DNA of 64,000 nt from Dimorphilus gyrociliatus (Eukaryota; Animalia; Annelida): contig CAJFCJ010000003.1 in assembly GCA_904063045.1 (NCBI GenBank), positions 372,001 through 436,000 on the forward strand. Direction: 5' to 3'. Shown here piece after piece: positions 9,501-46,901 of this stretch. The notes under the pieces were generated by a model. The model did no database searches, was not told the DNA's origin, and was given only the letters and a program-made list of their open reading frames with translations. Both the position numbers and the translations under genes were made by a program. Numbering within the stretch: position 1 is the stretch's first letter; each line of letters opens with the position of its first letter.

Positions 9501-9941
9501 ATTATCGTAAATTTTAGTATTCATACGCAATAAAAGAAAGTTCTGTAAAGATATAGAATTTATTATTATAATACGTTGAGAAGGTTCGACAAATTTTATA
9601 TTTATTAATTATATAAAGAAAAAATATACAATTTCCTTTGTAATTAACACGAAAATCATTTCATTTAAATAGGCCTATATTTAAATAAATATATAAACTC
9701 TGCAACAAAACCGCCGTCATTGAGTAATTTTCGGAAAATTCTTTTTCGACGAATCATAAGCGCCTTCTGAATAATTACAGAATAGAGTATAAATTGCTCG
9801 GCCAAAGTAATCTGTATTATTCCGCGGATCAATACGCGACCCTTTGAAAGAGTATCGCAACTTGACGACAGTGTCAACACATACTGGTTAAATATTCTCG
9901 ATCATTTTGAATTCTGAAGCCGTCAAGAACGTTCGAATATC

Positions 9942-11934
9942 ATGAAACTTTTCGTTTGCGCTGTTGCTTTATGCTTAGTTGCAGTTTCTTTTTGTGCTGA
10001 TAAAAAACCAGGAGAATCATGTACAAAGGATGATAAATGCACTTTAGAATCGGAATGTAAGAGAACAGATTCATACTGTCCAGAGATGAAATGTCACTGT
10101 AAGGAAAATAAGGTTGCAGAGAATAAAAAATGCGTAGATGCAGAGAAACCGAGTTAGTTTTTTTATTTCATGTACATTGCTATGTGTATATTTAAAAAGT
10201 TCTTTTTCCCATCAACAGAAGTTATGTATGACGGCATATGTGCAAAAACAGAAGACTGTTACACTGGTTTGGAATGTACTGACAAAAAATGCAAATGTCC
10301 GGCAGCTAAAAAGAATTACATTGAGATAACAATGACGTGCACAGATAAAATTCTTTTTGGCAAAAATTGTAAGGACACAGCATGTGAAGGTAACAACATG
10401 GAATGTAAAGACACGAAGTGCGTATGTAAAGTTGGATTCAAGGCTAAGAACGATAAAGATAAAATATGCAGTGAGATAGATTGTAAGTATTATCATATTT
10501 TAAAAAACAGGGAAAAACTCCATAACGAATGAATAAGCTAAAAAAATTTGTACTTAACTTGAAATGTAGTACTATAAGTATTTTTCCTAATAAAATAATG
10601 AGAGAAGGAAAGAAATGATAGAAGAAGGGGAAGGAGAATATTTGAAATCTATTTGATTTAATTTTTAAAAGGAGGAAAGAGACTGAAATAATAATAAAAA
10701 GAAGATATTAAAAAGTTTACATCAGTCTATTCTTAAAAGAGCGAAAGTTGAGTTAACACTGGTTAATTTAAAAAGAAATATTTATAATGGTAACTTTTTA
10801 GGGAAATTTTTAACTTATCTAACATTTTTTATATTAGTTTTATAGGAGAATTAACTTTTAATAAGGTTCTCTTATGGAATATAAGATAGGGCGTTGCCAT
10901 TTCAAATATGGCGTCCGAGAATGTGTCGACCACGTCGGCGCGCATTTTTAGGGTTTGGCCTACGGTCTGTAAACACAAAGGGGGAAAGTTGTATTCTTTA
11001 TGAGTAAGGTAAAGGAAATAATGTGTCAGTCGGTTAAGGTGTCTTTTGAATAGAGGAATATGAACATGAGTCATATTATTCACTCAGCGGAACGCCTTGA
11101 TACTTCCTTTATTTTAAAGAGAGCAGTGTTAACAATGCTAGTTAAATAAATTGTAAGGACATTAACTAAAGACAATAAGTTAAATATCAGTATATTTTTT
11201 AAGGTTAAAACTTATTTAAAATAACATTAAATCAATATTTAGGCTTAATATCTCTTTTTTTATTAATGCCATTATTAGCAGTATTATTCTTTTTACTTAT
11301 TCAGCAAGATTTTTCTTAGGCACATTATTGCCAGAGTTTGTTATCTTAGACTAGATTTGCTATAGCTCTAACATGTAATTCTAATTAACCATCTATTTCA
11401 TTTTATTTAACTTCCTTAGACGCAGGACTAGACGGTGACTGTGACAAGAAGACGTGTAATCCCATGATGGGTTTGGAGTGTACAGGTACAGGTACTCCAA
11501 AAAAATGTACCTGTCCTAAAGATACAGAGGCCAAGGAAGTTTACTATATGTCAGATAAAGTAAAAAAATGCTTGACGGCAAACGGTATATTTTTTTCTTA
11601 CTTGTGTTAATAATTGTGCAACGCTAACTCTTAAACTCTTTCCTTTAATCGTTTAGCCACCGTTAATGTTGGAAAAGACGAAGAATGTATGGCTACGTAT
11701 GATAAAGACGGTAAATATTGCAAAAAAGATCTAAAGTGTCAAAAATGCCCAGGAAGTGATGATTTGAAATGTCGGGAAGGAGAAAAAGATACATGTAAGA
11801 TAACATATAGTTTAAAAAAAGACAACATATATTAATGAATTGATTAAAACGTTTTTATAGCTGGCGTTGGACAAATGACATTTAGCATGTCTGTGGTACT
11901 CGGATGCGTCGCTTTAAGAAAATTTTTTATGTAA
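9942..11934 (+). CDS. Secreted/GPI-anchored Cys-rich protein with EB-like (EGF-related) modules, 5 exons
   Basis: Signal peptide MKLFVCAVALCLVAVSFCA. Exons are approx. 9942-10153, 10219-10482, 11420-11584, 11657-11795 and 11861-11934, all joined by phase-1 GT-AG introns. Repeated C-x-C-x-G-(F/Y)-type modules occur, and the C-terminus is hydrophobic (SGVGQMTFSMSVVLGCVALRKFFM*). Confidence 0.8.
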
Positions 11935-26200: not shown

Positions 26201-29200
26201 TACTTAAGATTCTTGAGGAAAGACGCTTTTGCACTATTACCAACTTTAAGAACTCTGTTAGTTTCTTTATATAAAAAAGAGTAATTGATTTGTAAAATTC
26301 TCTCTTTATCTTTTCCTTTAAAAAGAGATTTAGAATCGAATCTTATTTTAACGATTGAAAATGATACTTTTCCATCTGGATTGACAAGCTTGTAAGCTAT
26401 TTTTTCTTGATTTTTATTGGTATACTATGTATTATATAGTGAAAATTCCTACTTTCTTACAGAGGATTATCTAATAATCGATTCCGATTTCAACACAAGT
26501 ACCCCTTTACAAATTTGAGAGACTTACAAGCGTTAGATTTGAGTTCAAATCAAATTACAGTAATACCTGATGAAGCTTTTCATAATATGACTAGCTTAGT
26601 CACGCTGTAAGTAATAGAAATTAAAAGATGAATATATGCAGTATATATAAATATATATATATATATATATAAACTTGAATAATTTATTTAGGTCATTAGA
26701 CTCAAATAAAATTGCACGTCTTTTAAAAGTTCATATAAAAGATTTACCTCTTACCGATTCACTTCTTCTACAAAACAACGATTTGGCCTATATTGAAAAT
26801 GATACTCTATCACATCTTACAACAATGGGAGGTTTATTGTAAGTTACCTATTGTATATTTCAAAAAATTGATAATTATTATTTATTAATTATTTTGTTTA
26901 ATTAAAGATCATTTGCCAACAATAAACTTACGCAAATACCAATTCCTGACTTTCATGATTTATCTATCGGCGATAGTCTTCAGCTTCAAAATAATAGATT
27001 AACCAAGATACCAACTGATGCATTTAAATCTCTAACTACTGGTAGAAAGTTAGTATATTTTAATTAATAATAGATTATGTATTTATATACTGTTTTTCTT
27101 TTTATATCAACACAGCATCGATCTGAGCAGTAATAGAATATCTCGAATAGAAACGAATGCATTTCAAACAGTTACAGCTCAAACTTTAACAATAACCAAT
27201 AATCCATTGAGATATTTGGAAATTTCTTCATTCAACGGATTAACAATAGGGTAAAATAGATTTGAACAAATAGGCTATTTGTTTATTATTAATTTATTAT
27301 TTCTCTTAATAGAAACTTAAACCTAAATTCTATGTTGATTGAGAAAATTATTAATCATACATTTATCGATGTTAGAGCAACCAACACATTTGATTTAAGT
27401 GCAAATAAGATAAATGAAGTTGAAAGTAACGCATTCGTTAATTTCGTTTCTGATACTAATTTGTAAGTTTTGTTTATTTCATTGAATTGTTCATTCATTA
27501 TTATTTATTCATATATTCCATTTAATTTTCTAGTGATATGAGCTCTAATTTACTTAAAACTCTACCGCAATACATGTTTACTGGAACGTCTTCGGCAAGA
27601 GGAATCTTTAATTTAGAAAATCAAATATTAGACGTTTTACAACCAACGACATTCGATGGTATCGATTTAAGAGCTGAACTGAACTTGAATTCAAATAAAT
27701 TCCTTATCTTTCCTCAACCGGCTTTGAAGAATGAACGTCTTAGTGGATTGTGAGTACATCATTCACATAGCCATTAATAAAGTAATTTAACAAATCATTC
27801 TCAAATCAAAAATTAAGACTTATCGAGAATAATCTAATGACTGAACTTCCGGTTGGATCGTTCTCCGCCAACCATAATGGAATTCAAACTTTATCCTTAT
27901 CCAATAACAAAATATCTGTCCTAGCCGACGGGGCTTTAGACGCTCTTACAGGACTACAAACTTTGTAAGTAGGACAAAGTGTTAAAACTAATAATAGACT
28001 ATACTTTTTTCTTATGTTTATCTTCAATAGTTCAATGGCAAATAACGGTTTGCTCCGGGTTGGAAAGTCAGCATTCGACAGTCTTTCAAATTTACAGACA
28101 ATTAACCTACAAACGAATAAATTAGAAACATGGCATAAATTTAAACAAATGAACAATCTGGCTAATATTGACTTGTCTGCAAATAAAATAAAGTCTATTG
28201 CTGCCTTGGCGTTTCATGACTTACCTAATTTGAATTCATTGTAAGCATTTTTTTATAGCCATTCATTTAATTGATATTGAATGACAATAACTATTTACAA
28301 TTACTTACCGAACAATTCAGGATAATTATAATTTTTAATAAATGTTTTAGAAAATTAACTGGAAATCCTTTAGGGTGTGATTGTGCTCTATATCATTCTT
28401 TGCACAACGTATCATCAACAATAGTTGGTGGATTATGTGCAGAAAATGCTTACGCTGCGGGTGCTGTATTTTCCAACGATCCTACTGATACAAATCACTA
28501 TACATTATTCAATCCAGAAGTATTTCAATGCTGTAAGTTATTAATAGTATTATAATGTTTTGTTTAATCCTATTCGTATCCTAGCCGTTTATGGAATCAG
28601 TACTTCGGAACCTCAAACTGGTCATCTTAGGGTTTGGTGGTTGCCACCACCAAATATAACATTACCGACCACCGACAATTATACCTATATAATTACTTGT
28701 ATTGATCAAGATGCTACAGTAACATTAACCCAATCTGTTGACCTACCTCCTGAGAACACAACTGGAGAATTCACATTTACTTCTGGCGTTGTCAGAGCCA
28801 AAACCTATGGATGTTCAATTAAATTGGATAAATCAGGAAACATAAGCGCTTCCAGTGAAATTGATTATATAACAATATCTGCTGACCTAAGTAAAATGTT
28901 TAATATAATTTTAATTCAAGTAATTATTTTCAAGTGATTACATTCTTCTCTCTTCTTATCATATAGGTGGCGTTACCGGTGCAGGACCTGACGATTATAT
29001 TGTACCCATCAGTTACTATGATTTTTCTTTGGCTCATCCGGATTTTGCGGGAACAAGTCCTAAAGAGTTTAGTAAACCAACTCTGGTTCCCAGCCCATAT
29101 GGAGCATGGCCTAGAATAAGCGATACTCCCACAGCCGATATATTCTCCATCTATTTTAGGGAAACCTCCGATGATACAAATCGTAAACTTAATGGAAATC

Positions 29201-32200
29201 TTACATTAAAATATCAGAATACAACTGGAAAACATTTATTCTCAACCGATCTCTACTTTCCAGTTGACGCAACTGGATTTGATAATCAAGGACAGGTCGA
29301 CTGTGCTGGAGCATCCCATAATTTTGGTTTTACATCAGCCATTAGATCAGGCTTTACTTTCTTGGGAAATGGTACCTTAACTTTTGGAGGTGGAGATGAA
29401 CTATGGGTGTATATAAATAATGTAAGAGTATTAGAAGTAATTACTGATTCACTTGGAGCAGATATTCCCTGTAAATTCATCGATATAACAGCCGCGGCTG
29501 GAAATGGTAAAATTATACCGCAGACTGGAAAAATTTCAGGATCTGAATGCCAAAGCTTAACACCGACCCCATCGGAAGAATTTCAATTAAAGCTTGAGAT
29601 TGGTGAAACTTATCATATCGACATATTTCACATAGAAAGGAGGCCGTGTAAATCTCATTTATTAATAGAAACTGAAAGTATTCGTTGGGCAGTTAGACCA
29701 GGAGACCCATTACCAGTTGACTACATAGTTGAAATAAGTGAAGATTCGCATGTTGGTGCTATTGGCTTCGATTTTTCCCTAATTGATCCATTTTCAATTG
29801 GTCCTACTTACACGCTTGTTTTAACAAATGGAAACGAAGCTAGACACTTTTCATTTCAATCCGATACCCCTGCAGCTCGAACTGCTGGTATACCTCCTCC
29901 TCCAAGTGCCTACTCGTATACAAATCTACCTGGTTTGGGTATACCTTTTATTGAATGCCCAGTTGGGCCAACAACTATAGCAGATCCTAATGTAGCTGGA
30001 ACACAAACTTTTGTGATACTAACAAACAACTGTTTGTTAACTGTCGCTACAGCATTAGATTACGAAGTTTCTACCGGATATAGATTAATTACAACTGTTT
30101 CCGATCCTGGCCAACCAAATTTTCCAGGATTACTGGTTTTCACAATCAAGATAGTGGATGTTAATGACAACTGTCCAGTTCTTGAAGACGATACATTTTC
30201 ATTTGAACCTAGGCCAAGCTTGAGTCCGAATCCACTTCTAAGGCTTAATGCTACTGATAGGGACAATTCGAATAATAGCTTAATCACATACCTAACTTCA
30301 TATCCAACTTTAAGCCCACCCCTCTCAAGATATAATGATTCCCTCGATCTTTATAAATTTGTGTTTCCTGAAAAGACAACTGTAATGGTTTCTATAGCAG
30401 CATTGGACAATGGAAATCCAAGGAGAGGAGCCATCGCTACGGTTAACGTAACAGTTGTTAATAAGTGTTTGATTAGTATCCTCCGAAGGAATTTAGAATA
30501 CAAATTCGTTGTGAATGCAACTAGCGGAGAAGTTTACTTTAGAATACCGAAATATTACATAAGAGACTTTTGTAAGAATATACACATTAATCTTAATAAT
30601 CGTCTCATTCCTTATATTTAAATTTATATTATCTATAATTATCTCTAGCATGCAATAAAGTTGCTGGTATGGAAACCGGTTACGTTCTAGAAGAACAAAT
30701 TTCAGCATCAAGCCACGATCCATTAGGATATCCAGGAAGAGGGAGAATCAATACGACATACGGTATAGTATATTATTGACGAAAAGAATACTATTATCAA
30801 CAATATTATAATACGAATAATAGATGCAACTGGCTTCTTATACGGAGGTTGGGTTCCTCTTGTTTCCGATCTTAATCAATGGTTTCAAATCGATATGAAA
30901 CAGAGATACGTATTTAATAAACTACTTTTTCAAGTAACTACTACATTTGTTTAAAACTTACATACATAATATATACTTTATATTTTAAAGGGTCAGCAAG
31001 ATGATGATGCTTGGGTTCAAACCTACGAAATCTCTTACAGAGATAGCAGTACTGCATTCCAAACGTATTTTGACAAGGCTTCTACCAGCGTCTTTACAGC
31101 CAACACAGATAGAAATAGCATAGTTGAACATACATTAAATCCAAGATTTACGGCCCAATTTATTAGAATTATACCAAAAACTTGGACTAAGCACATCGCC
31201 CTTCGAATGGAAATAATTGGATGTCTAGAATCAGATCAAGAACAATACGATCTTTGGTGTGATAGATGCGACGCTGGCTATTATTGTCTTGGCGACGGGA
31301 ACAAAATACTCTGCGGTCAAGGAGGAAGACCTCTTGCTGAACATTCTTTCGGAGGATCTGATCAGTGTTCTGACTGTCCGAAAGGATGGGTAAGAAACAA
31401 TACAATTAGTACAAATTTATTCTATAAAATGCATAATCTGTTTCCTGATTAGATATGCAAAGAAGGTCTAGCAAAGCCTTGTCCAAAATATCATTTCATA
31501 AATTGCACTGGTTCAACTTGGTGCCCAGATAGTTGTGCTAAGTGTCCTTCCGGTTATGCTTGTAGGGGTGGTGTTAAATATCCGTGCAACGTTGGAACGA
31601 TATCTGATGGAACCCTTGGTAATATATTTCTATTAGTAGGGTAGTTGTTTTTAAAAATATTTCTACTCTAAACAGAGTATTGCGACATGTGCAAACCGGG
31701 AACATTTCAAAATGAAACTCTACAAACTACTTGTATAGATTGCCCAATAGGTTACACTTCGTCAAAACAAAAGGATAGATGTAGCCCTTGCCCACTATCG
31801 ACATACTCTGTTAAAGGTGAAATATGTAAATCTTGCCCACCTGGCGATTGTAAATGTGATGAATCTATAAAGCCTTGCGCAGAAGGAGTTACCTGTATTA
31901 ACCTTGAGGTTTAATAGATTGTTTAGATAGCGAAATTACTATTAAAGAATACTATTTTATTATATTCCAGTTGATTAGTTCTGGAATAACTCCAAATTTT
32001 AGATGTTTGGAATGTCCTAAAGGGTACACTGGAGATGGCGTAACTTGTACAGATATCGACGAGGTAATTAATAATTCTTATTTATAATTAATTAGTTCTA
32101 TAGTTTGTCTTATTTTTCAAATTTAAGTGTACTCTTTATAAACCTTGCTTTAATGAGACATGCATCAATACTATTCCTGGTTATCAATGTAAAAATTGCC

Positions 32201-35111
32201 CTTGGGGATACTCGGGTAGTTTTGAAGATAGTCACGCTCAAGCCTTCAAGCATAGAGTCTACGAATCATGTAATACAAAGTTCGCAGATATCCAACAACA
32301 ACAATGCGGCGATGTAAATGAATGTTTAACAAACAACGGTGGATGTGATCCAAATGCAAAGTGTATTAATACAATAGGAAGTTTCGAATGTGGATTTTGT
32401 AATCCTGGCTTCCTTGGACACGGGAAATACGGATGCTATTCAGACGACTATTGCGGAAGTGGAAAAAACGATTGTGACGTAAACGCTATCTGTATTTACA
32501 CTGGTCCAGCCCAGTATCGATGCGAGGTAATAATCGATCTATACAATATCTTTTAGGATTGAGTATTCTATTAGTAACGTACAAGAAAAATCATTATTTT
32601 CTTATTTCCAAGTGCAAGGATGGATATGCTGGAACTGGACAGATGTGCGCTGTTGATACTGATTTAGACGGTAGACCAAATAAAAGATTACCTTGCGATT
32701 TCGATTTCTGTTTTTATGTAAGTAAAATACTATTCTGTTAAATGTTGTTTACCTTTAATATCTCTACTTTTTGCAGGATAATTGCCCGACTATTCCAAAT
32801 AGTGGACAAGAGGATGCAGGTTACTATAACTTCCCATACTTTTCCTTTTTTTGCATCACTAACAAAGAAGGTATTTAAATTTAATAATAGATGGGGACTT
32901 TATTGGAAATTTTTGCGATTACGATGATGATAATGACGTCACTCCGGATGAAACTGATAATTGCCAATTTAAAGTTAACTTTGATAAAGCTGACAGTGAT
33001 GGTGATGGTGTTGGTGATGCTTGCGATAATTGTCCAAATGATGCTAATCCCGATCAATTAGATTCAGATTCCGATGGTATTGGTGATGCCTGTGATACTG
33101 ATGACGATAACGATGGAGTTCTCGACGGTGCTGACAATTGCGCTACAGTCGCAAATCCTGGCCAAGAGAACGCAGATGGAGATAATTTTGGCGACGCTTG
33201 CGATAATTGCGTAAACGTTGCAAATAATAATCAGGCCGACAGCGATCAAAATGGTTATGGTGACGCGTGTGACACTATCGGAAGTCCCAACCAAGATCCG
33301 GATGGTGATGGAGTTCTAATAGGTGATAATTGTGGGGAAATACCAAATCCCAGCCAATCAGACATAGATAACGACGGTCTAGGGGATGTTTGTGATAGTG
33401 ATGTGGACGGAGATGGTTTATCAAACGAAATTGATAATTGTCCATTTGTTAGTAATGCTGATCAATCAGATATAAATGGAAACACTATCGGAGATGCTTG
33501 CGAAACAGATACTGATGGAGACGGTATAGCAGATAACAAAGATTTATGTCCCGAAAATCCTAAAATTAATGTTCTTAGCATGCAAACCTATACCAGTGTT
33601 AATTTAGATCCAACAATTACTGACACTCCCGTTTGGAAATTGACCCATTCAGGAAGAGAAATAAGGCAAACAGCAACCAGCACAGCTCCATTTATGCTAG
33701 TTGGATCCCAGAAATACTACGATGTTGTTTATTCGGGTACCTTTTTCTCTCGAGATCAGGATTCAATAGGGTATATGGCGGCGGTGTTTGGATGGCAAAG
33801 TAATAGAAAATTCTATGCATTACTTTGGCTAAGAGACCACAAAAATTATGGAGGAACAGCCTACCAAGGTGGTTTAAGAGGTATTCAAGTAAAGAAAATA
33901 GACTCTTCCACGGGTCCAGGAACAGTACTTGGTAATGCAATTTGGCATAGCGCAGACACCGCAAACGAAGCAACATTACTATGGCACGATCCGAAAATGA
34001 TTGGGTGGGAACCGTTCAAGTCGTATAGATTTTACATAACTCACAGACCGTCTGTCGGTACAATAGCAGTAAAAGCATATAATAGCGAAGGAACAGAGAT
34101 AGTTAACTCTGGCGAATTATTCGATACCCAATATCAAGGTGGAAGATTAGGAGTTATATTATTCGATCAAAAGTCAGCGATCATATCTAATTTGAACACG
34201 AAATGCCTAGACAGATCGAATAAGGCAATGAAATTTGACGGAGTTGACGACTACATAATCCTAGAAAACGTTTACGAATTCGATATTGAGTTGAGTTTTA
34301 CATTCGAAGTCTGGATAAAACCATCAGGCGTATCGGGCAATCAACCAATATTAAGCTCAAGAGACGAGATGCTACTATTACAATTGAGTGACGATAAACT
34401 AAACATTACTTTTGGATCGTATAACGCACTTGGTAGCACATCATTGACAGCTAATGTTTGGAATCATATTGTTTTACGATACGATGGTCAAAGTAAGTAA
34501 AAATTAATAGAGATTATCAATGAATAAACAAAAGCTTTTTACAGATCATGTTTTGGCAATGTATCTCAATGGAATAGCCGGCGGTACTGAAGCTGAAATT
34601 ACCGATTTAAAACCATTGAGCTGGGTAATTATTATCCTATATTTAGTATTGAAAAAACATGCTAATTTTCTTATTATAATCATAATGGTAAAGTGATAAA
34701 TATAACACAATCGTTTTTTCAATAGGTTTACAGTAATTCTTCTGACCTTTTTATTGCAACCGACTTTGAAAATCAATATGCTGGTTTAATGGATCTAATT
34801 CGATTCTATAGCATTTTTGTACCAGATACAGAAATTGATGATCACTTACAGTTGGTCAAACCAGTTTTACAATTACATAAACAATATTTACAAGTTAATA
34901 TTGACTTTGACGATGATTCTACGGGTATTGTTAAAAGTATTGGAGTAAAAAACAACCAATTCGTAACCAATGGAGATCCAAAATACGTTCTGGTTAGTGT
35001 TATAATTAGTGTTATACATTATACACTTTATAATTTTCAATATAACTCTTTCTACAGAGCCAAAGTGGAAATGCAAAATTCGTTTTAACTTATCCGAATA
35101 ATAAACGTTAA
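23216..35111 (+). CDS. Mega-thrombospondin-like giant ECM protein: signal peptide - LRR array - FN3 - fibro-slime/PA14-like - cadherin - F5/8C - Cys-rich TNFR/ephrin-like repeats - EGF/EGF-Ca - TSP type-3 repeats - TSP C-terminal L-lectin - LamG/pentraxin-like
   Basis: ATG 23216 begins MVHLKIILVLFINLNQLYLINS. Many LRR exons follow (LxxLxLxxNxL) with an LRRCT GNPLGCDC, then HPDF...HNFGFT...GGGDELWVYIN, LDYE...DVNDNCP...DRD (cadherin), NQWFQID...RIIPKTWTKHIALRMEIIGC (F5/8C), DIDEC/DVNEC EGFs, DxDxDGxGDACD repeats, and GRLGVILFDQ (TSP-C) followed by FTFEVWIKP...WNHIVLRYDG. The last exon is 35058-35111 (SQSGNAKFVLTYPNNKR*). Confidence 0.88.
25091..25114 (+). repeat. (ACT)n trinucleotide repeat in a mega-TSP intron
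   Basis: About eight ACT units, directly visible. Confidence 0.85.
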
Positions 35112-36366: not shown

Positions 36367-37456
36367 TCATTGATTGATTATCATTCCTAAAATAATGATA
36401 CTTACTCCAAAGAGTATCGAATTTATTCTTGGATATGATGCACTACCTATAAAAAATTATTAAACAAATAGGTAGAGATTGATGGTTATTGATTAAGTAT
36501 CGAGAACTTACTTGGTTGGCATTTTTGTTGAGTCTCTCCCGGACAAGTTACGCACACGAGACCACTTGAACAATACTTACCATTGCTATTGTTATTTTCG
36601 GTGCATGAGTTACCTTTCTCTAGTCCAACTTTAGCTGGATAAATAGATAAGATATTTAGACTATCAACGTATAACTACTAATTGAATCAATTAACGTTAT
36701 TTACCATCTTTATGTAAGCATACAGTTCTAGTTTCTCCGAAACTTTGAACAGATTTCCAAACATAATTTGTTGCACATTCGCATTTGCTCTTTATGCATG
36801 ACAAGTTAGATTCATTACTACAATCGCCACTCGAAGAACAACTTTCTCCTTTGGATTTTGCTTAAAAAAGGATATTTGATCATAAGTATTTGTATAATCT
36901 ACATTTTCGGAAAGTATATTTAACGTACCAAGAGGAATGCATTCCTCTTTCGGATAACTACTCGAAGTTTTCATTCCAGCGGGACAAGTACACTTTGAAC
37001 TAGAGCAAATTGAATTACCCACACAATGAAGATTTGGCGTGCAACTTTCTCCTATCAGTTTATAACTGTCAGGAAAACATCTCTTTTTTGAAGGTGATAG
37101 TTTATGGCCACTTTTACATTTACATTTTCCAGATGAACATTCCGAACCTATTGTGGAACAGATATCATTCGAAGAGCAACTTTCATCTATTTTCCTCTCT
37201 GTTAAGAATAGCAGTTTTCATTAAAAGTGATAAATTATGAAGCAATTTTCAAAAACAATTAAGCATTACCCCTTTTACATGATGAACTTGTTTTGCTGTA
37301 TCCTGATTTACAAGTACAGAACCCTTTAGAGCATGAGCTAGAAACTTTTCTGCACTGCTCCCCTGATGAGCAGTCTCCATCACCTCCACAACTTGTTAAA
37401 GAAAGTACCGTACCAAATGCAAAATATACGAAAAGGAAAACTATAAAGGTTCTCAT
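36367..37456 (-). CDS. Second secreted/GPI-anchored EB-like Cys-rich protein, 5 exons, paralog of the 9942-11934 gene
   Basis: Signal peptide MRTFIVFLFVYFAFGTVLS (ATG at 37456). The introns are phase 1. Exon 4 encodes GKYCSSGLVCVTCPGETQQKC, and the last exon encodes SASYPRINSILFGVSIIILGMIINQ* (GPI-type tail). Confidence 0.82.
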
Positions 37457-38298
37457 CTTGTCAGCTCTTGGAGACAAACTGCAAACTGCTAATTTAAAAT
37501 TTTGTTTGGTCGGTTGCTTAGAGCGTGATGTCAATAAACGATTATTCCTAGCAAAGAGAACATTTATAACAATCTAGAGAATACATCGATTAACCATATT
37601 ATGTCGCTCATTTGAATATTCAGTTGTAGGTACAAGAATTGCATATATGCATAGTCGATATTATAGAGGATGGGGAAATTTTTTCCAGACTGACGATATT
37701 CGATTTTGTTGCCTAACAATTTAATAGGGTGTTAAACTATTATGAAATAAAATTCGACCTATTTTCCATTGTTTTATAAAGAATAAAATCTGAGAATAAA
37801 AACAATAAAGCCTATTATTCATCTATTAGCGACAATATCAAAAGTAATAAATTAGTTAATTAGGTCTTGCTATAGAAATCCCGTTCTTTCCTGGTATAAT
37901 ATTGTAAAATAGATACTCTGTACAATGTCTATTAAATATCTTTATAGCTGTGATTTATTTGTTAGGTAAAAGGGTAACAGAATGGAATATTGAGAAAAGA
38001 GATGATTAAGTAACTATGTACTTAGTGCAGCAAGGTATAATGATTTGGAAAAGACGATCAATTCAAGTTTACCTAATAAAAGGGCTGAAATAATTCTTAT
38101 CAATGGTGTTGAAATCTTTTAATCATTGTTTTTTTTTTAAAAAAAACAAAAGTCTTTTTAGTGTATTTTTCATTTTTGTATTGATTTTCAAAATACACAA
38201 AATAACAATTAGAAAAAAGAGAGCTTTCTTTCAATATTCTTATTCATACAGTATATACTGTATTTGTTAGAGATGCCAAGTGGGAGAGTATAAATCAT

Positions 38299-39951
38299 TT
38301 AATAGCGTCTTGCTCCTGCTCCTCCATATCTTCCTGAGTTATATCTGTCTTGATGTCTATTTCTATCATTATACCTTCCCTGATCTCTTCTAGCAGAATT
38401 ATTGAAATAATAACCCTGTGTTTCTCCAGCATATTTAACAGATTTCTTTAATAAAGAGAAAACGGTGTCCTTAGACGGTGGTTTCATGTTTAATACATTG
38501 AACCAATCACCGTAGTTTTTTATTTCTTCTAGACCTTTGAATCTTGCTTTAATTTCCTTCATCATGCTTTCAGAAGGAAATCCATTGTTTTCGTCATATC
38601 TTTGTATAACATTATTTATTGGCATGTTGCCTGGCATTGCAACATCCAAGAAAATTACTTGAAATGCAATCAACTTTTGGCTAACCTGGGTAGCTTGGAA
38701 AGTGGTAGATAATCTGTAATCTCGATCAACAGAAGGGTCACCTAATTTAGAATGATCTTTTAAGTACCACATTACATTTCTCTTCCAGCATTCCTCAATT
38801 ACATGAGTGTTTACATTTCCCCACCTATACTTTTCACTTCCAGCCAACATTATCAACCATTCGCCAATATTTGGACACATACTCTTATGTCTATGATCAG
38901 GTTTTCCAATAAAATTTTCAATTCTTTGCTCCATCATGGGTCGAAGCTTTGGATAGGTGTCGCAAGCCCATAATAGTAATCTATGCAGAGCAAAGTAGCC
39001 GTTCAAATGGTGTTCACTAGCGACTTTTGACTTTGAGAATTGAACAACAGTTGAATTCATAAGATTCGATAGGAGCTTTATAATAGCTTTGTGTATGTCA
39101 TCTTCCATTTGCAGCTTAGTTGATAAAGCTTTAACTGTTTTTTCAAAGGTTGGCTTTAAATTCTGTCCATGTATTGGATTTATAAACAGTGGGAGAAAGT
39201 ACTGTAATTTTTCCTTCATCATGGATGTAACCGAGCCAGTATCTTTCAGCATCGAATAATATGAATCGGCTAACAAGTATTCGCATGGAGATGTCAGTTG
39301 AATATTACGATTTTGTCCTTCTATAATTATGCCATAACCAAACAATTCGCTCTCATTCCTAGGTCTTTCTTTCGGGTTCAATTTGATCTTTGATATATAA
39401 TCGACAACCACGGTTCTCGAAGCTGAAGCTGACTTACTCGAGGCTTCTTCTGGTAGAGGGGGAAATGGTTTTGCGTAGCTGTGCCCACAATCAGAACATT
39501 TAAAACCCTTTGTCAAGCGAACATTTGCATTTGAGGAACCATCTCGTTCATTATCAATTATAAAAGCCAATAAATTTAGTAAAACAGTTTGAACAGTATA
39601 ACTGGGTGACCATCCAACTGACTTTTCATCGGCCCATTCTGTGTGGATATATTCGAAATCGGAAAAGATCGACAAACAAACCTTAGTGCCTTTCTTTCCC
39701 TGACTGGCAGCACCACCAGTGAATTGATAGCCCATAGGCATAAATTCAGCTGAAGGTGATTTGAATGGATAGCATTCAGGAAAGTAGAGTATTATATGAT
39801 AAACGTCTCCATTGTGTACAAAATTACAATGCCATTCAAGGAAATTTTCATCTAGTGGTTCAGCAGAGATGTTTGAAATAGGATTCTCTCTCAACTCTTC
39901 CAAATCCTTCATAAGACGTTTAATAACTCTTTTTTGTCCAATTGATGACAT
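38299..39951 (-). CDS. Intronless atypical ubiquitin-conjugating (E2/UBC) domain protein with ~400-aa C-terminal extension
   Basis: The 550-aa uninterrupted ORF has a UBC fold: KRLMKDLEEL...LEWHC...FPECYPFKSP...KVCLSIF (catalytic Cys)...GWSPSYTVQTVLL. The HPN motif is absent, and there is an R/Y/D/G-rich tail. Confidence 0.9.
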   Translation of the reverse strand: MSSIGQKRVIKRLMKDLEELRENPISNISAEPLDENFLEWHCNFVHNGDVYHIILYFPECYPFKSPSAEFMPMGYQFTGGAASQGKKGTKVCLSIFSDFEYIHTEWADEKSVGWSPSYTVQTVLLNLLAFIIDNERDGSSNANVRLTKGFKCSDCGHSYAKPFPPLPEEASSKSASASRTVVVDYISKIKLNPKERPRNESELFGYGIIIEGQNRNIQLTSPCEYLLADSYYSMLKDTGSVTSMMKEKLQYFLPLFINPIHGQNLKPTFEKTVKALSTKLQMEDDIHKAIIKLLSNLMNSTVVQFSKSKVASEHHLNGYFALHRLLLWACDTYPKLRPMMEQRIENFIGKPDHRHKSMCPNIGEWLIMLAGSEKYRWGNVNTHVIEECWKRNVMWYLKDHSKLGDPSVDRDYRLSTTFQATQVSQKLIAFQVIFLDVAMPGNMPINNVIQRYDENNGFPSESMMKEIKARFKGLEEIKNYGDWFNVLNMKPPSKDTVFSLLKKSVKYAGETQGYYFNNSARRDQGRYNDRNRHQDRYNSGRYGGAGARRY

Positions 39952-40530
39952 GATTTCAAAGTAATTTTAACGATTCCAAACAATTTAAATCTTAAAATTC
40001 AAACCGTACTGAATTTCTCGACTGAAACCGTCTGGTATGAAGATCTATGTCCCTCTTTTTTCACTTTTATACTATTATAATTTTATATTGCGAAATATAT
40101 AAAAGAATAGCTTCGTTTAAAAGAAAGTCTTTTCTATGAATGTTTTGCTAATAACCATTTCCTATTAGCGATCCTAGTGAGAATTTCAGTATTACTAATA
40201 AAATTTTATAGAGAATCTTCTACAATGTCTATACAGAATATAGATGTCATTAGTAGTTACACACCTTTATTAGCACTAATACGATACTCTTTGAGTTGCA
40301 CCAGATTACGAAAGTTTTCGAAATTGTTATTGAATAATACATCGATTAACCGAGATACCAAGAAAACAAAACCAATGAACACATAGCAACGTTTAAGTAA
40401 CGAAAATAGAAAATGTACGAATTTGACAATGAAAAGCCTCCTCTTAAGTACATGCATAACAAATAGTGCAGCATACTTCTCCTTTTCGAATGTTAACTAT
40501 GCCTCCTTCCTTTAGATGATGTAATTTCAA

Positions 40531-42694
40531 TTATCTTACAAATTTTCTGCAACCTGGACATTTTTTCTTTGATTTTCTATTATAAAGAAATTGCATAAGA
40601 AAAAGGAAAGGGAACTATTTGATCTTAAAGAACGGGGGAAGAGAAAGAGAGAAGGGCGTACTTTAATTGAATTTTGTAGCATTTCGAACAGAATGTATGT
40701 CGGCATGGATTTAAAATTTCGTATGAAAATACTTTACTAAAACAACCAACGCATTGTTGAGTAAAACTTCTTGATGATTTGATTACAACAGTATCTTCAG
40801 CCTAATTGTCTTTTGTTTAATTATTCTTTATTATAAATTATACACTTACCTTATATTCCCATTTTTGTAGGCCTAGACTAATTTCGAAATATTGCAAAAT
40901 AACAGATAAAACTTCCATTTTCTCATGACTAATTATTACTTGTCCAATACGTCTTTTACCATTTGCATCAGCGAGTAATTTAAATAAGCAAAAGTAGAGT
41001 AGAGAACAATGTATAATATTTCCGAAGCACCCATTATAAGTTTAGAAATAATTAATGAATAAATTATGCAAATATATGTATATATTAATATTTCTTACTA
41101 TTTCCAATAGGAGTAAGTGTAATAGTTGAAAATGAACAAGAGATTTTTTCCAAATATTCCCCTATAATAGTGATGAAATAATCTAATAATTTAGGCGAAC
41201 ATCCAGAAACTGTCTTCATTCCAAAAATAATAAAGAGATTCTTATATTGCAAAGGAGAGTTGCTTTTAAGAGGACACCAAAGTCCGCCCATTTGATCCAA
41301 AATTATATTATTCTTTATTTCGTCGAAAACACTGATATTTACACTTTTCTCTAATAACTCCATTATAATTGGACACTCGTGAGGTTCAATGTCATCCCAA
41401 GAAAAGATAAGAACATCCGATTCGCTTTTTAGTATCGATTTCCATCCAACAGTCAATAAACAATTAAGGAAATTATAATTAAACTCTTTTCTTAACAGAA
41501 TAGAATGTCTATAGTTTTTATCAAAGGAATAATAAAAGTTTGCTAAATTATCATGTTCTTGGTATAAATGAATTTGACTAATTGGAATTATTTCTTTCCT
41601 TATCTCTAAAGCTTCGGCTAACATCCACAATTTCTTTACCTTCTCTAAGTCAGTATCCACTAAATGAATGCAATTTAAAGTAGAAGGAACACTGGAATGG
41701 TATTGACTTAGTCCTAATCCTTTCAATATAGCGTAGAGAAGCTCTTGAAAGGATTTCTCACTGGAAAAGGCTGAAAATAAATCCGAAACTATAGCAAAGG
41801 ATTATCAATTGTTCAAGTTATGATTAAATTATGCAATTATAATTTAAGATGAAAATATGGCAGACGAAGCCTGAACTTACTTGTTCCACCCAAAATGGGA
41901 AGTACTAAGGATTCAGAATTCGTTTCTATCGTCTTATTGATCGTATTGTTAACGCATAAGGTAACGTCGTTTGGATTTGATGGTAGGCACGTAATAATTA
42001 GAGTTTTCCACTTGAAATTTGAATGATGTCTCAATCTTTCATAATATGCTCTTCCATTTGTGATATTTCTCAAAGTCATTCCTTTAACTAGACGCTTCTT
42101 TGATACTCGTACACTGTTAATAACGTCATTCGCCACACCATTGTCCATATTATATTTAGCATCTACAGAAAAGGCGACGGCATCAGAGGACACTTTACAA
42201 ATATTTGTACGATAGATAAATATCTTTCTTCCATTCGATAGTTTTATTGCTAAGCACTTTTCCGAAGGATCTGATAATTCTAATTGTCGAATTCTATACT
42301 GATTTCTTTGTTGGATAAAATTTGTCCATAAATCGTTGCTCGTTATCTCCGTTAATAATTGATTATTAGAAGATTGAGTAGAGTTTTCGTTACTTGATTG
42401 TTGTAAATCCGTTAAACATCTATTGGTAATATTATGAATTAATCCATTTGAAGATGAATCAATTAAAGTATAGAAATCATTTAATTCAATTGTTATGAGT
42501 TTTTTTGCCAAGAAGAATTTTTCGCTATTATTTCCATGAATTTTTAATGAATTTTCACTTTTAATCCATGTATAATTTATATTTGTCCTATTTCGAACCG
42601 ATTCCATAAATGAATTTATGGTAGAGCTAGTCTCGAATAGTTCATAAGTATTATTTAGGAATTTGTATTCCCATTTATTCTTGTAATCAGTCAT
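40531..42694 (-). CDS. KH-like + two divergent macrodomains + C-terminal C3HC4 RING protein, 5 exons
   Basis: Exons are 42694-41881, 41770-41099, 41040-40850, 40801-40662 and 40576-40531. Macro-like segment: IFIYRTNICKVSSDAVAFSVD...GVANDV...LVLPILGG. The RING (CVGC...PCRHTFCSKC...CPGC) is assembled from the last two exons. One acceptor (41041-41042) reads AA rather than AG. Confidence 0.72.
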
Positions 42695-43804
42695 TGATGA
42701 ATTTTCCTTCAGTTAATTAAAAATAAAACCAATTACACAGTATAAAATAATTTACTGTCTATTGAATTAAGACTATTTATAGTTATACACTGCATTTATA
42801 TACATGTATATATAAACAGTATATATCTGCTTCTATCTTTATCTTTATCACTCTATCTGTCTCTCTTCTTCCTTTCTGTATCTATGACTATATACCACAA
42901 TTAATGCTGCTTCTTATCCGTTGATTTTGCTGCAATTCATAGACTTTTTATACACAACATATATATATACATATATATATATATACAATGTATATATATT
43001 AATATAGAACCTGAAAAGATATACATATGTATTCGCCTTAATATTTTACTTCTCCATAGAGAAATAGTCGTAAAGCGTCAACAATTGACACTTTCCAGAT
43101 ACCATCTAATAAAGTACGAAGGTTATAAGGAATATAAGAACCTATGTAAAACAAACTACATTTACTCCACCTAGCGGTATAGCAAAATTGTCAAAGAATA
43201 TGCAATGGCATCCATAAACTTGGGGCATCAAAAAGACACGGCAACTGGTGTTATTTTTCTTTTATACACCCTTAAGTAATATTGCAAAATTTCAAAGTTA
43301 TCTAAGAAGAAGAAGAAGAAGAAACGGAAGAGAAGGATAAGATAATTTACGAATAATTTTAAGAAATGTGAAAATAGTATTAGAGTAAAGAAGCAATATT
43401 AAGATAGATAGTGGGGAGGAGAGAGTGAGCGCGACTAATAAGGATATATTTTCTAAATAAAGTATATAGACAATGTTTCAAACTGTGTGATACATTGTTA
43501 AACTAAAGCAATGATAATAACAACTAATTAAATAATCTTATTTGCAAATGAAAATATTAATCCTCAATTTCTAATTAATTAATTAATTAACTTTTTAAGC
43601 TATATATTCAATTATATATGGAATATTATCAGTATTTCGAGTTAAAACTATACTTAAAATTAGAGATATTAGCAAGCGTCTATAAATAGAGTACAGTACT
43701 AAACAACTAAACTATAATTCAATAAACTTTATATATCGTATAACAATAAACAATACCAATTATAAATAAAAACAAATTCATATTTACATTTAGAACAAAT
43801 ACAA

Positions 43805-43813
43805 TCACGTGAC
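43805..43813. promoter_or_regulatory. E-box/CLEAR-like TCACGTGAC between the head-to-head macrodomain genes
   Basis: 9/10 match to GTCACGTGAC, about 500 bp upstream of the + strand macro gene ATG. Confidence 0.35.
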
Positions 43814-44305
43814 AAGGAAGCTTTCTATTTTATAATATACAATATTATCGGTATTATAAATAATAGAACTTAGTTCGTTAGAAAAGAAACGATGATCAGA
43901 TTATTAATTAATTAATTAATTCTAACAATTACTAATATCTATTAATTACAAATTGATAATTTAAACTGAAAGACGTACGAATGGGGAGATGATATATACG
44001 TACAAGTATTTAGTTGATAAGAGATGCGAATATTTTCAATACGATTATTGTCATATTTAAAAGGGGAAGAGCAGCTATATCTGTATTATGTATTTAAAAC
44101 AAAAATAGTAATTCAATACGTTAATAAGTTTTCCTTTTTTTATGAAATTTCTTATCCTCTCTTCCAAAGAAGGTTCCAAAGTTCATCTCTTTTTGTTAAA
44201 ATACAAAAGTTTCTCTTCAACTTATGCGTAGTTTAATCGTTTTATTAATAGAATATTGTCATTTTGTCAAGAGAAAACAACCAGTTTAACAAGAAAATAG
44301 TAAAA

Positions 44306-46901
44306 ATGGACGATAAAGAAAATAAACTAAGTATTCGTATCAATTCATCAACTTTTTACGGTTATTTTAAGAATAGACTATCTGTAAATATTCGTAAAAT
44401 ATGCGATAAACATTGCGTTGGTCTACGTTGGATATTTGATTCGAACTTATTAGAAATATATGGAAAAAAGGATAATATTGATAAAGTAGAGCAGATGATT
44501 CTTGATGAATTAAAAAATCATGCTTGCATTGAATTGAAATTATCGTCGAATATAAAATTACCAAAGTTTGATCATTTAGCATTAACGCCTATAGTTACGG
44601 ATGATTTCTATAATCGAAATACTATGTATATTGGCCCTAAGGATAATCTTATCCAATTAGCGGACGATCTCTGGTCTAAATCCTACTTGGACAATTTCAC
44701 TTTGATTACGTTCAATAATACAGATTTTAGAAATCTGGATGACGACAATGACTATTTAAAGCTATTGAATGATCAAGATGATGTATTTGGAGAATATGAA
44801 AGTGAAAATAGTTTCTTTGAATATTTAACTGAAAGTGAAAAAAACGAGATTTCCGAACAGAAGAAAGAAGAGGAGAAAATGAAATCTCTTTTACAAAAAT
44901 CAAACGAAAATCATTCAAGGAAGACAAGCCTTCAAGATGACGTTCATAACGATGAATCTTTTTATTATAAATCGAAATTTAAAAGAAATTTTATTGGTAA
45001 AAAGATTAATGATTATTATTTTTTTATATAAAGAACTATTAATTCTTTTTCTTTAGTGGCAGCTTGTTGCTTTGATATAAAATATTCAAAGTCCGATGCT
45101 ATAGCTATGTCAGTCTTATTAGGAAATAATAATCAATTTAAATACGGAGCACAGAAATCAGTATGGGATTGTCTAGACGAAGAAGACAGAAAGAAAATTG
45201 ATAATACAATAACCAAGTGTAATTTTAAACATGGACAAATTCTTTATCAGAATCTTCTTAAATCAAAATGGAAAGCTATAATTTTAGTATTACTTTCGCC
45301 CAATAGTGTTGATGACTTGTATACTCAATTAAGAAAATCGACAATGAATCTATTAAAGGCCGCCGATGAATCTGGTAATAAAAATCTTGCAATGACAATT
45401 ATAGGAAATTCATTAAGTATTATTAATTAACTTGTATGGATTATACTAAGTAATCTTGGTGCATATTCTTTCCAGATAAACAACGGATTAGTTTCTTAGA
45501 GAGAGTTCAAATTGTTCTAAACACTATTAAAAGTTTAAACTTTAAAAATTTAATATTTATTAAACTAATTACGAATGATAAGCGTAAAATGAAAATTTTA
45601 AAGGAATGCTTAAACGAATACTTTGAAAAATCATCCCAAGCTCAATTATTAAACTGTTCATCTAAGAAAAAGAAGAGTTTCTTTCCAACAAAAAAATTAA
45701 GTACAAAAAGTTATTCGAGTCCTTCAACACCAAGTTACGAAAGCGTTAAAAGTTCTTTTAACAATATAAATATTCATAAGAGATTTCTATTCCCATTTAC
45801 ATTCTTAAAGGAAAACGAGAACACTTATTTCTACTATAGCATAATTAATAATCAAATAATTAAATTTCATTCAAAGTTAATATTTATCTTTATTAAAGAG
45901 TTCTTTGTAAAGTTGGATTTAAATCAAGAAGATTTAAAGATTATCTTATCAATTAATAATAAAGAAAATAAAATTAATATTAATACTGATAACGATAGTA
46001 TTGCTAACATAAAATATCAATTAGATAAATATTTAGAAAATATTATAATAAGGAAGATACATATTAAGGAAAACGAACAAGAGAGTATTAAATTATTAAT
46101 AGATAAGGAAATTAAGTTAAACAGTAATCAAAGATTATATTACGAGTTGAATAACAATGACCTTTCGCTCATTGGAAATGAATATTTTATATCTAAATTT
46201 ATCAATAGGCATTTAAACTTGTGGAAGAAGTTTAATATTTTCGGTAAGTAGATGAATATGTATACAAAATCTAATTTATATTCTTTCTCTCTCGCTCTCT
46301 CTCTCTCCTCATTCATTAGTAAAAGCTACAAGTGAAGATATAACTAAAGTTACAGCAGATACAATTATCGTTCCAATAAGTGTAAAACTAAGTGGACAAG
46401 TCTTCAAAGCAATCCTCAATCATCTTCAAAAAGATGATAAGAGAAATTTTCTTCAATTTCTTGACCACTTAACTTTGAAAGCCGGAGATGTCTATTATTT
46501 TGAATTGAAATATTCCAAATGGAAGAGTATTGGCGTTATAATTATTTCTCCAGAAAATTTCTATTCTTATATAAAACTGTCCGTAGTCAATCTATTGTAT
46601 AAGATTGATGAATTCATGAATGCTTCTGCTATTATGCCTGTTGTTGGCGGTTCAATAAGTTAATTTTCATTTCCTTCAATGAAAGTTATTAATTATTAAT
46701 TTTTACTTTTTTCTTTTACCTTTCATTTGACATTTAGACGTCAACGGAATTGATTTCGATAAAACTTTAATGGAAATTGCTCATGCTGTAAAACAAGTTC
46801 AAGTTGAATATTTAATTCATTTGCACATTGTTGCTTTAAAGAAGAAGACTGTTGAAAAAATTTACAAACTTCTCTACGAAGATAAACAAGAGACATTTTA
46901 A
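44306..46901 (+). CDS. KH-like + acidic linker + macrodomain + KH-like + macrodomain protein, 5 exons, no catalytic PARP domain
   Basis: Exons are approx. 44306-44997, 45057-45415, 45476-46244, 46320-46658 and 46739-46901, in frame. Macro-like starts are CFDIKYSKSDAIAMSV and SEDITKVTADTIIV, with ends LAMTIIG and IMPVVGG. A KWK-hydrophobic motif is shared with the 40531-42694 gene. Confidence 0.72.

Follow-up and report, generated by a model that had tools for sequence, protein, structure and literature searches.

A head-to-head pair of divergent KH-like/macrodomain genes, one with RING exons, beside an atypical E2 gene in the annelid Dimorphilus gyrociliatus

Contig CAJFCJ010000003.1 of the genome assembly GCA_904063045.1 of the miniature dinophilid annelid Dimorphilus gyrociliatus carries three adjacent genes, here labelled E2, g2 and g3, which we analyzed within a stretch of 64,000 nucleotides (the window; positions 372,001 to 436,000 of the forward strand, with all coordinates below counted from its first letter). 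Judged from their sequences, g2 and g3 are distant paralogues in inverted orientation, known to date from D. gyrociliatus and one relative (L002) only, and they combine KH-like domains with macrodomains and, in g2, with the exons of a C3HC4 RING. The explanation we favor, at about even chances, is that the two genes are a stripped-down, fast-evolving offshoot of the DTX3L/macro-PARP (PARP9/14) kind of reader and ligase. On this reading g2 would be a macrodomain-bearing RING ubiquitin ligase (E3) without a Deltex C-terminal (DTC) domain, and g3 its PARP9-like partner without an ADP-ribosyltransferase (ART) domain. That the pair is PARP9/DTX3L-like in architecture can be said with more confidence than that it is so in function, where the case for and against is roughly balanced. 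A preliminary description of this DNA had seen in the three genes an ADP-ribose/ubiquitin defence module. It is partly confirmed in what it observed and partly supported in how it interpreted it: all three genes exist as neighbors essentially where it had placed them, the g2 stop lying 579 bp upstream of the E2 start codon on the same strand and g2 and g3 standing head to head, while a module of all three genes is not supported.

Domain architecture of the g2 and g3 proteins

Structural models were obtained with AlphaFold2 (AF2) for exon-bounded pieces and for the annotated protein DgyrCDS2028 (376 aa), which covers the first half of g3, and were compared with known structures by VIA-align (VIA) and Foldseek; Pfam was scanned against each exon open reading frame (ORF) separately rather than against the spliced proteins. 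The relative is represented by an 18.6-kb Logan contig of the run SRR23372228. The coding regions and domains are located as follows.

40531-42694, minus strand: g2 coding region (hand gene model, RNA joints, orthologue in the relative)
42694-41881, 41770-41099, 41031/41030-40850, 40801-40662, 40576-40531, minus strand: g2 exons (model and RNA joints)
42461-42685, minus strand: g2 KH-like domain, aa 4-78, fold match aa 4-80 (AF2 with a confidence score, pLDDT, of 72-89; VIA)
41607-42256, minus strand: g2 macrodomain 1, aa 147-326, interrupted by intron 1 immediately behind the P-I-L-G-G-T loop (AF2, VIA, Foldseek)
40871-41483, minus strand: second macro-like region of g2, aa 368-549 of the in-frame model, degenerate (motif positions, intron phase)
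40549-40753, minus strand: g2 C3HC4 RING, aa 573-612, split by intron 4 (translation, Pfam, relative)
44306-46901, plus strand: g3 coding region, 773 aa (hand model, RNA joints for introns 1 and 2)
44306-44996, 45057-45416, 45476-46243, 46320-46658, 46738-46901, plus strand: g3 exons (GT..AG introns of 59-79 nt)
44324-44542, plus strand: g3 KH-like domain 1, aa 7-79, fold match aa 4-72 (AF2, VIA, Foldseek)
44990-45630, plus strand: g3 macrodomain 1, aa 229-402, fold match aa 223-369 (VIA, Foldseek)
45784-46242, plus strand: g3 middle region, aa 454-606, called a second KH-like domain in the preliminary description (hhalign E 0.13)
46243-46886, plus strand: g3 macrodomain 2, aa 607-769 (hhalign)

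Structure prediction recovers KH-like and macro folds in both proteins. Residues 4-80 of g2 adopt a KH type I fold (E8-13, H17-21, H24-37, E40-44, E49-54 and H57-81 in the AF2 model), which VIA superimposes on the KH domain of ASCC1 with a Z of 8.9 and a root-mean-square deviation of 2.2 over 72 residues, and on Vigilin KH4 with a Z of 8.8. The first KH-like domain of g3, taken from a model of residues 1-369 of DgyrCDS2028 with a mean pLDDT of 55.7 that is higher within the domains, matches the KH domains of MEX-3C, FBP, hnRNP K and PCBP2 (Z 7.4-8.4), and Foldseek pairs it with the KH domains of 3n89; the two proteins together thus reach Z values of about 7.4-8.9 to many KH domains. As the nucleic-acid-binding GXXG loop is absent from the first 90-100 residues of both g2 and g3, we term these domains KH-like. 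No RNA recognition motif was seen in g2.

The first macrodomain of each protein shows the macro fold. Residues 143-271 of g2 align with the macrodomains of Af1521, DarG, PARP14, macroH2A and PARP9 at VIA Z values of 9-10.7, and Foldseek returns 72 matches at E<=1e-3, with E values of 8e-6 to 6e-4 to DarG, macroH2A, PARP14 and PARP9 macrodomains. Among the 50 matches listed, the best plain macrodomain is DarG (8.4e-6), and the titles that do not name a macrodomain are SPX fusions, designed hydrolases and an unnamed Thermus protein. For macrodomain 1 of g3 the closest structures are PARP14 MD1-2 and MD2 (Z 10.4 and 10.3) followed by PARP9 MD2 and MD1 (9.9 and 9.8), with a Foldseek E of 4e-4. Macrodomain 2 of g3 is assigned its fold by homology, being matched to the macrodomain 1 profile by hhalign with a probability of 96.5% and an E value of 8.9e-10 over 103 columns; g3 ends with this domain and carries no PARP domain.

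The RING of g2 is spread over two small exons and reads C-x2-C-x11-C-x-H-x2-C-x2-C-x11-C-x2-C, with all eight zinc ligands in place and the same pattern in the relative. Exon 4, which holds six of the eight ligands, is by itself matched by zf-C3HC4_3 (E 8.5e-5) and falls just short for zf-C3HC4 (20.9 bits, cut-off 21); compared with the PDB it gives generic RING matches with no preference for Deltex. The ORF of g2 ends 5 aa past the last RING cysteine (18 aa in the relative). In the Pfam scan of all exon ORFs there was no significant match to macro, KH, PARP/ART, WWE or DTC, so that the preliminary remark on the missing ART/PARP, WWE and DTC domains holds. Six of the eight domains it had called in g2 and g3 are confirmed; the second macrodomain of g2 and the second KH-like domain of g3 are not, as detailed below. 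A 22-aa tblastx match between the g2-E2 spacer of the relative and the RING exon was treated as noise, there being no ORF at that place.

Paralogy, divergence and divergent transcription

The kinship of g2 and g3 is detected by blastp (1e-8 and 1e-7) and by the hhalign comparison of their macrodomains given above, and both genes have a phase-1 intron at the same place, right after the glycine or glycines of macrodomain loop 2. Their orthologues in the relative are about 50-55% identical to them, compared with 62% for E2 and 72-79% for unrelated neighbors, which makes g2 and g3 the fastest-evolving part of the region. Word searches with the first exons of g2 and g3 retrieved only the ORF of the relative and the window's own annotated protein.

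Transcript data come from the one public run containing this stretch (X1), in the form of Logan contigs, in which rare variants and minor isoforms are dropped; since introns are skipped in these contigs, they derive from RNA. Both genes are transcribed and spliced, at similar depths. A contig of 1,506 nt confirms introns 1 and 2 of g3, introns 3 and 4 being predicted only. The start codons of g2 and g3 are 1.6 kb apart, and about 0.8 kb between the exon in the 5' untranslated region (5'UTR) of g2 and position 44274, where the g3 contig begins, shows zero RNA depth (43450-44250), from which we conclude that the two promoters are separate and divergent, about 1 kb apart, with no shared untranslated region. 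The GenBank annotation of GCA_904063045.1 calls no gene at g2 and has for g3 only DgyrCDS2028, which departs from exon 3 before its end and closes with seven residues (R-M-L-K-R-I-L) absent from the 773-aa model; the locus thereby exposes two gaps in the annotation, a missing gene and a shortened one.

The g2 transcript and the frame of its RING

The features that bear on the g2 transcript are the following.

43011-43178, minus strand: g2 5'UTR exon, upstream end approximate (RNA joint 42929/43011)
42930-43010, minus strand: g2 5'UTR intron, 81 nt, GT..AG (X1 RNA contig)
41031-41098, minus strand: g2 intron 2, 68 nt, GT..GG in the X1 RNA contig
40936-40938, minus strand: TAA stop ending the ORF of the observed transcript, 5' of the RING exons

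A contig of 2,209 nt joins the 5'UTR exon to exon 1, confirms introns 1 (110 nt) and 3 (48 nt), contains RING exon 4 and ends exactly at that exon's last base, 40662. Intron 4 (85 nt, 40577-40661) is predicted and lies outside the listed RNA joints. At intron 2 the contig joins 41097 to 41028, skipping 68 nt with an ambiguity of 2 nt; all three ways of placing the intron are non-canonical, GT..GG being the best. An intron of 67 nt (GT..TG) would restore a frame of 617 aa that includes the RING and in which exon 3, ahead of the RING, supplies the loop G-N-R-C-F-G-N and then a helix-strand-helix, as expected of the C-terminal portion of a macrodomain. The orthologue in the relative has an intact ORF of 639 aa with the order KH-macro-macro-RING and four GT..AG introns at the same positions, including a canonical AG at the acceptor homologous to that of g2 intron 2. 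The RING-frame reading of exon 3 is conserved there, whereas the other frame runs into a stop. Given this intact ORF and the conserved exon 3, the ancestral gene encoded a single KH-like/macro/macro-like/RING protein.

Two claims of the preliminary description are affected. That a RING arises by splicing of two small exons missed by the ORF list is borne out by its eight ligands, its conservation in the relative and the transcription of exon 4, but in the sole assembled transcript it is out of frame; likewise, the fusion of macrodomain reader and RING stands for the relative, while the ORF of the D. gyrociliatus transcript stops before the RING. With the ancestral AG lost and the only assembled transcript frameshifted, the coupling of macrodomains to RING may be compromised in the sequenced strain. 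A minor in-frame isoform may nevertheless exist, because rare variants are lost from the contigs and the read depths point to additional, unlisted contigs over 40450-41049. A shorter exon 3 (40938-40850, acceptor GACAAG), giving a g2 of 586 aa, was rejected: the RNA contig starts exon 3 at about 41030, and the long RING-frame exon is both conserved in the relative and the source of the helix-strand-helix otherwise missing from macrodomain 2. Separately, two X1 RNA contigs leave g2 at 40822, inside intron 3, and at 41033, at the end of intron 2, for sequence from outside the window; these could be chimeric contigs, another haplotype or further isoforms.

Relationship to DTX3L, PARP9 and PARP14

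KH-like, macro and RING domains occurring together are a hallmark of the DTX3L/PARP9/PARP14 group, in which the KH-like domains mediate protein-protein contacts (PMC11080071). The resemblance of g2 and g3 to the vertebrate antiviral pair DTX3L-PARP9 (BBAP-BAL1) and to PARP14 extends to the head-to-head arrangement of the genes, to KH-like domains without nucleic-acid-binding loops, to tandem macrodomains in one partner and a RING E3 in the other, and to PARP9 and PARP14 macrodomains as the top PDB profile matches of the macro segments, so that the analogy drawn in the preliminary description is a reasonable one. A hidden Markov model (HMM) built from seven macro-like exon segments has macrodomains of these two proteins as its top five PDB matches (E 7e-4 to 5e-3, covering nearly the whole profile); an affinity to PARP9/14 at the level of the family is suggestive, not firm. 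The pair differs from the known system in that there is no ART domain and no DTC domain after the RING, in that macrodomains and RING reside in one protein (g2), in that g2 and g3 are each other's paralogues instead of members of two separate families, and in that beyond the macro profile no sequence similarity to DTX3L or PARP9 is detectable.

A fusion of macrodomain and RING is already known in lophotrochozoans. When the g2 model was used for a shape search of the ESM Atlas, it led to a mollusc cluster whose members carry Macro (100%), DTC (99%) and zf-C3HC4 (93%). Moreover, DTX3L is reported to have carried a macrodomain until PARP9 emerged, the DTX3L-PARP9 locus having arisen only after lungfish diversified (preprint 10.64898/2026.04.23.720386). 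With the mollusc and early DTX3L-like proteins g2 shares a macrodomain and a C3HC4 RING in one polypeptide, in the mollusc case within the lophotrochozoan lineage; it differs from the mollusc proteins in lacking the DTC domain and in being about 300 aa shorter, and the structural match is limited to the macrodomain (TM 0.39, 125 residues). What is new in g2 and g3 is the loss of the DTC domain, the paralogous partner without ART and the extreme divergence. The preliminary suggestion that the locus was assembled independently is thus unsupported, since mollusc clusters with Macro, RING and DTC exist and early DTX3L is reported with a macrodomain; more likely, the fusion was inherited and then stripped down.

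If g2 and g3 work as a reader-ligase pair, their KH-like domains would bring the two proteins together into a heterodimer, as in PARP9-DTX3L, at least some of their macrodomains would bind ADP-ribose and dock on targets modified by PARPs encoded elsewhere in the genome, and the RING of g2 would act as an E3 that recruits a charged E2, upon which nearby substrates would be ubiquitinated. A role in immunity may likewise be supposed for g2 and g3. The pair would then be a lophotrochozoan case, orphaned in sequence, of the logic that links a macrodomain reader to a RING ligase, reduced to KH-like domain, macrodomain and RING, and could serve as a natural experiment on the parts that a coupling of ADP-ribose reading to ubiquitination requires.

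Alternative explanations for g2 and g3

A number of results weigh against deriving g2 and g3 from the DTX3L/macro-PARP kind. No sequence search ties either protein to any DTX or PARP protein: a HMMER search with a two-sequence profile of g2 exon 1 against 1.84 billion representatives returned the orthologue of the relative only, and when the macro profile is built from four segments instead of seven, PARP14 MD3 is found at an E value of only 0.11, so that the affinity to PARP9/14 is weak and depends on the alignment. Of the Pfam families whose use the preliminary description had proposed, UQ_con passes on E2, but Macro remains below threshold (best 12.5 bits against 22, E 0.14, in g3 exon 2, with nothing in the other exons) and KH gives no significant match. 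The second macrodomain of g2 receives no support from hhalign (E 0.08-0.22, exon-only as well as fully spliced) and no PDB-profile or Atlas match. The motifs that contact ADP-ribose are partly kept, the adenine-binding Asp being present in both g3 copies (D-I-K, D-I-T) and replaced by N/S in g2, and of the Gly-rich loop 1 only N-G-V-A is left in g2 macrodomain 1. In Deltex proteins it is the DTC domain that binds ADP-ribose and holds it in place to be ubiquitinated; after the RING of g2 there is no Pfam match to it and no conserved ORF before E2. Finally, the 68-nt intron 2 observed in the transcript yields an ORF of 526 aa that terminates at the TAA at 40938-40936, with the RING in another frame. 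For the second macro-like region of g2 there is positional support, in that S-D-V-L-I-F-S corresponds to S-D-A-V-A-F-S, a P-I-G-N loop is present, the phase-1 intron is the same and the length is similar; loop 2 reads G-G-T-T-F in macrodomain 1 and G-N-R-C-F-G here. The second KH-like domain of g3 is matched by hhalign to the KH-like profile over 28 columns only, at the E value listed above.

These observations could mean that the two genes are decaying relics, macro-PARP/Deltex-type immune genes on the way to being lost as the genome is streamlined; in D. gyrociliatus g2 would now make a RING-less protein of 526 aa, the macrodomains would have lost ADP-ribose binding, and a scaffold function would be left at most. 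The lost acceptor of intron 2 and the frameshift in the transcript speak for decay, as do the erosion of ligand-contact motifs (in g2 macrodomain 2 beyond recognition), the fast divergence with no detectable sequence relatives and the fact that g2 is unannotated and g3 half annotated. We nevertheless regard it as rather unlikely: all exons of g2 are free of stops, both RING exons and the RING-frame exon 3 included, the zinc ligands are complete, the relative retains the full ORF, both genes are transcribed to similar depths, and an in-frame junction may exist among the minor isoforms that Logan contigs drop. We consider it improbable that the macro folds have nothing to do with ADP-ribosylation and instead have a nucleotide metabolite or the end of an RNA as ligand, or act purely as a protein scaffold, within a KH-like/RING regulator that has no link to PARPs. 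Macro folds do bind varied ligands, the canonical binding motifs survive only in part and the locus encodes no PARP domain; the closest profile matches, however, are ADP-ribose-binding macrodomains of PARP9 and PARP14, and KH-like, macro and RING domains, where they are found jointly, mark the DTX3L/PARP9/PARP14 group. An offshoot of the DTX3L/macro-PARP kind remains our preferred explanation of the pair.

The neighboring E2 gene

The E2 gene, whose protein is matched letter for letter on the contig, consists of a single exon.

38299-39951, minus strand: E2 gene, single exon, 550 aa (ORF, Pfam UQ_con, homologues, alignment)
39529-39918, minus strand: UBC core of E2, aa 12-141 (Pfam, PDB search, alignment)

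By its sequence the gene product is a real, atypical UBC enzyme, closest to Ubc6/UBE2J2, and the preliminary call of an atypical E2 is upheld. Residues 12-141 are recognized by Pfam UQ_con (1.1e-13; 51.4 bits, cut-off 27), the catalytic Cys92 (codon 39676-39678) is invariant in an alignment of 10 family members, and the HPN motif is missing, its canonical position being occupied by M-P-M and in the orthologues of the alignment by V-P-V/H. The nearest PDB chains are UBE2J2 (4.2e-10) and yeast Ubc6 (1.6e-9). Likeness to these nearest solved UBC cores includes, besides the lack of HPN, the sequence G-Y-Q-F (in the family G-aromatic-R/Q-aromatic) where J-family E2s have the GRF loop, and a conserved His after C-L-S-I-x-S-D-F. 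The Y-P-F and W-S-P-S loops, which we take to be those that contact a RING, are both kept. J-family E2s likewise have no HPN and are able to modify hydroxyl groups (PMC11649903).

Unlike Ubc6 and UBE2J2, E2 has no membrane anchor: judged from the alignment, the UBC core is followed by a CxDCGH motif, a conserved globular domain of about 350 aa and a hydrophilic, RG-rich tail, and no C-terminal transmembrane segment is seen. The ESM Atlas model of the C-terminal domain resembles rotifer and ascomycete UBC proteins (TM 0.8). A word search found 78 relatives, with full-length orthologues of 45-49% identity in Lingula and many molluscs and full-length members also in Amoebozoa (Physarum, Pelomyxa); rotifers have the family as well, and no vertebrate or insect proteins were among the 78 matches. 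In ascomycetes the family occurs fused to F-box and TerD domains, and a basic or RG-rich tail is seen across the family. We found neither a name for this family nor a characterization of it; widespread as it is, and with so large a conserved domain C-terminal to the UBC core, it merits study in its own right. Being old and widely conserved, it is not a lineage-specific companion of g2 and g3.

Adjacency of the three genes

The preliminary description went further and read the three genes as one ADP-ribose/ubiquitin defence module in which the neighboring E2 is dedicated to the macro-RING protein. Several features would fit: the short distance and common strand of g2 and E2, the retained catalytic Cys and presumed RING-contacting loops, the J-family-like character of the enzyme together with the ability of that family to ubiquitinate hydroxyl groups, and the conserved gene order, the relative keeping the succession g3-like, g2-like, E2. 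This conservation carries no special signal, because the entire contig of the relative is collinear with 28.5-45.65 kb of the window, unrelated small Cys-rich and thrombospondin/cadherin-type genes included. The E2 family, moreover, reaches back to brachiopods, molluscs and Amoebozoa, and rotifers and fungi have UBC proteins that share its C-terminal domain. The E2 orthologues of Lingula, Mizuhopecten and Physella have other neighbors, neither a macro nor a RING gene lying within 10 kb, and a tblastn search of the Lingula locus with g2 and g3 found nothing. Microsynteny therefore holds between D. gyrociliatus and its relative for the contig as a whole and is absent around E2 in these three genomes, and the claim of a dedicated E2 is not supported.

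The D. gyrociliatus genome is very compact, with 73.8 Mb, 208.86 genes per Mb and a median intron of 66 bp, and has neither operons nor trans-splicing (PMC7854359); the GC content of the window is 26-38%. At a density of one gene per 4.8 kb and with E2 and RING gene counts typical of animals, a rough estimate is that about one chance adjacency of an E2 and a RING gene is expected per genome. Adjacency alone is thus no evidence of a module at about 209 genes per Mb, and the position of E2 beside g2 is most likely ordinary gene packing; we give little credence to a three-gene module. Very improbable, in our view, is the more specific proposal that the locus is a minimal system for ADP-ribose-directed ubiquitination without PARP or DTC, in which the macrodomains of g2 and g3 would dock on ADP-ribosylated targets and the neighboring HPN-less, J-type E2, as a member of a class with intrinsic reactivity to hydroxyl groups, would be recruited by the RING and supply the ester-forming chemistry that Deltex ligases owe to the DTC domain.

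Two further features of the collinear region may be recorded. On the 3' side of E2, small Cys-rich ORFs with a signal-peptide-like start (e.g. 37259-37534) lie at 36500-37540 on the minus strand; they are about 35-48% conserved at 9570-10500 of the contig of the relative and probably belong to a gene for a secreted Cys-rich peptide. At 28500-35100 (11860-18640 in the relative) there is a large gene whose exons are 70-80% identical between the two species and which serves as a slow-evolving synteny control; on the contig of the relative it gives matches to TSP_3, TSP_C and Laminin_G_3 and a faint match to cadherin, and is therefore of the thrombospondin type.

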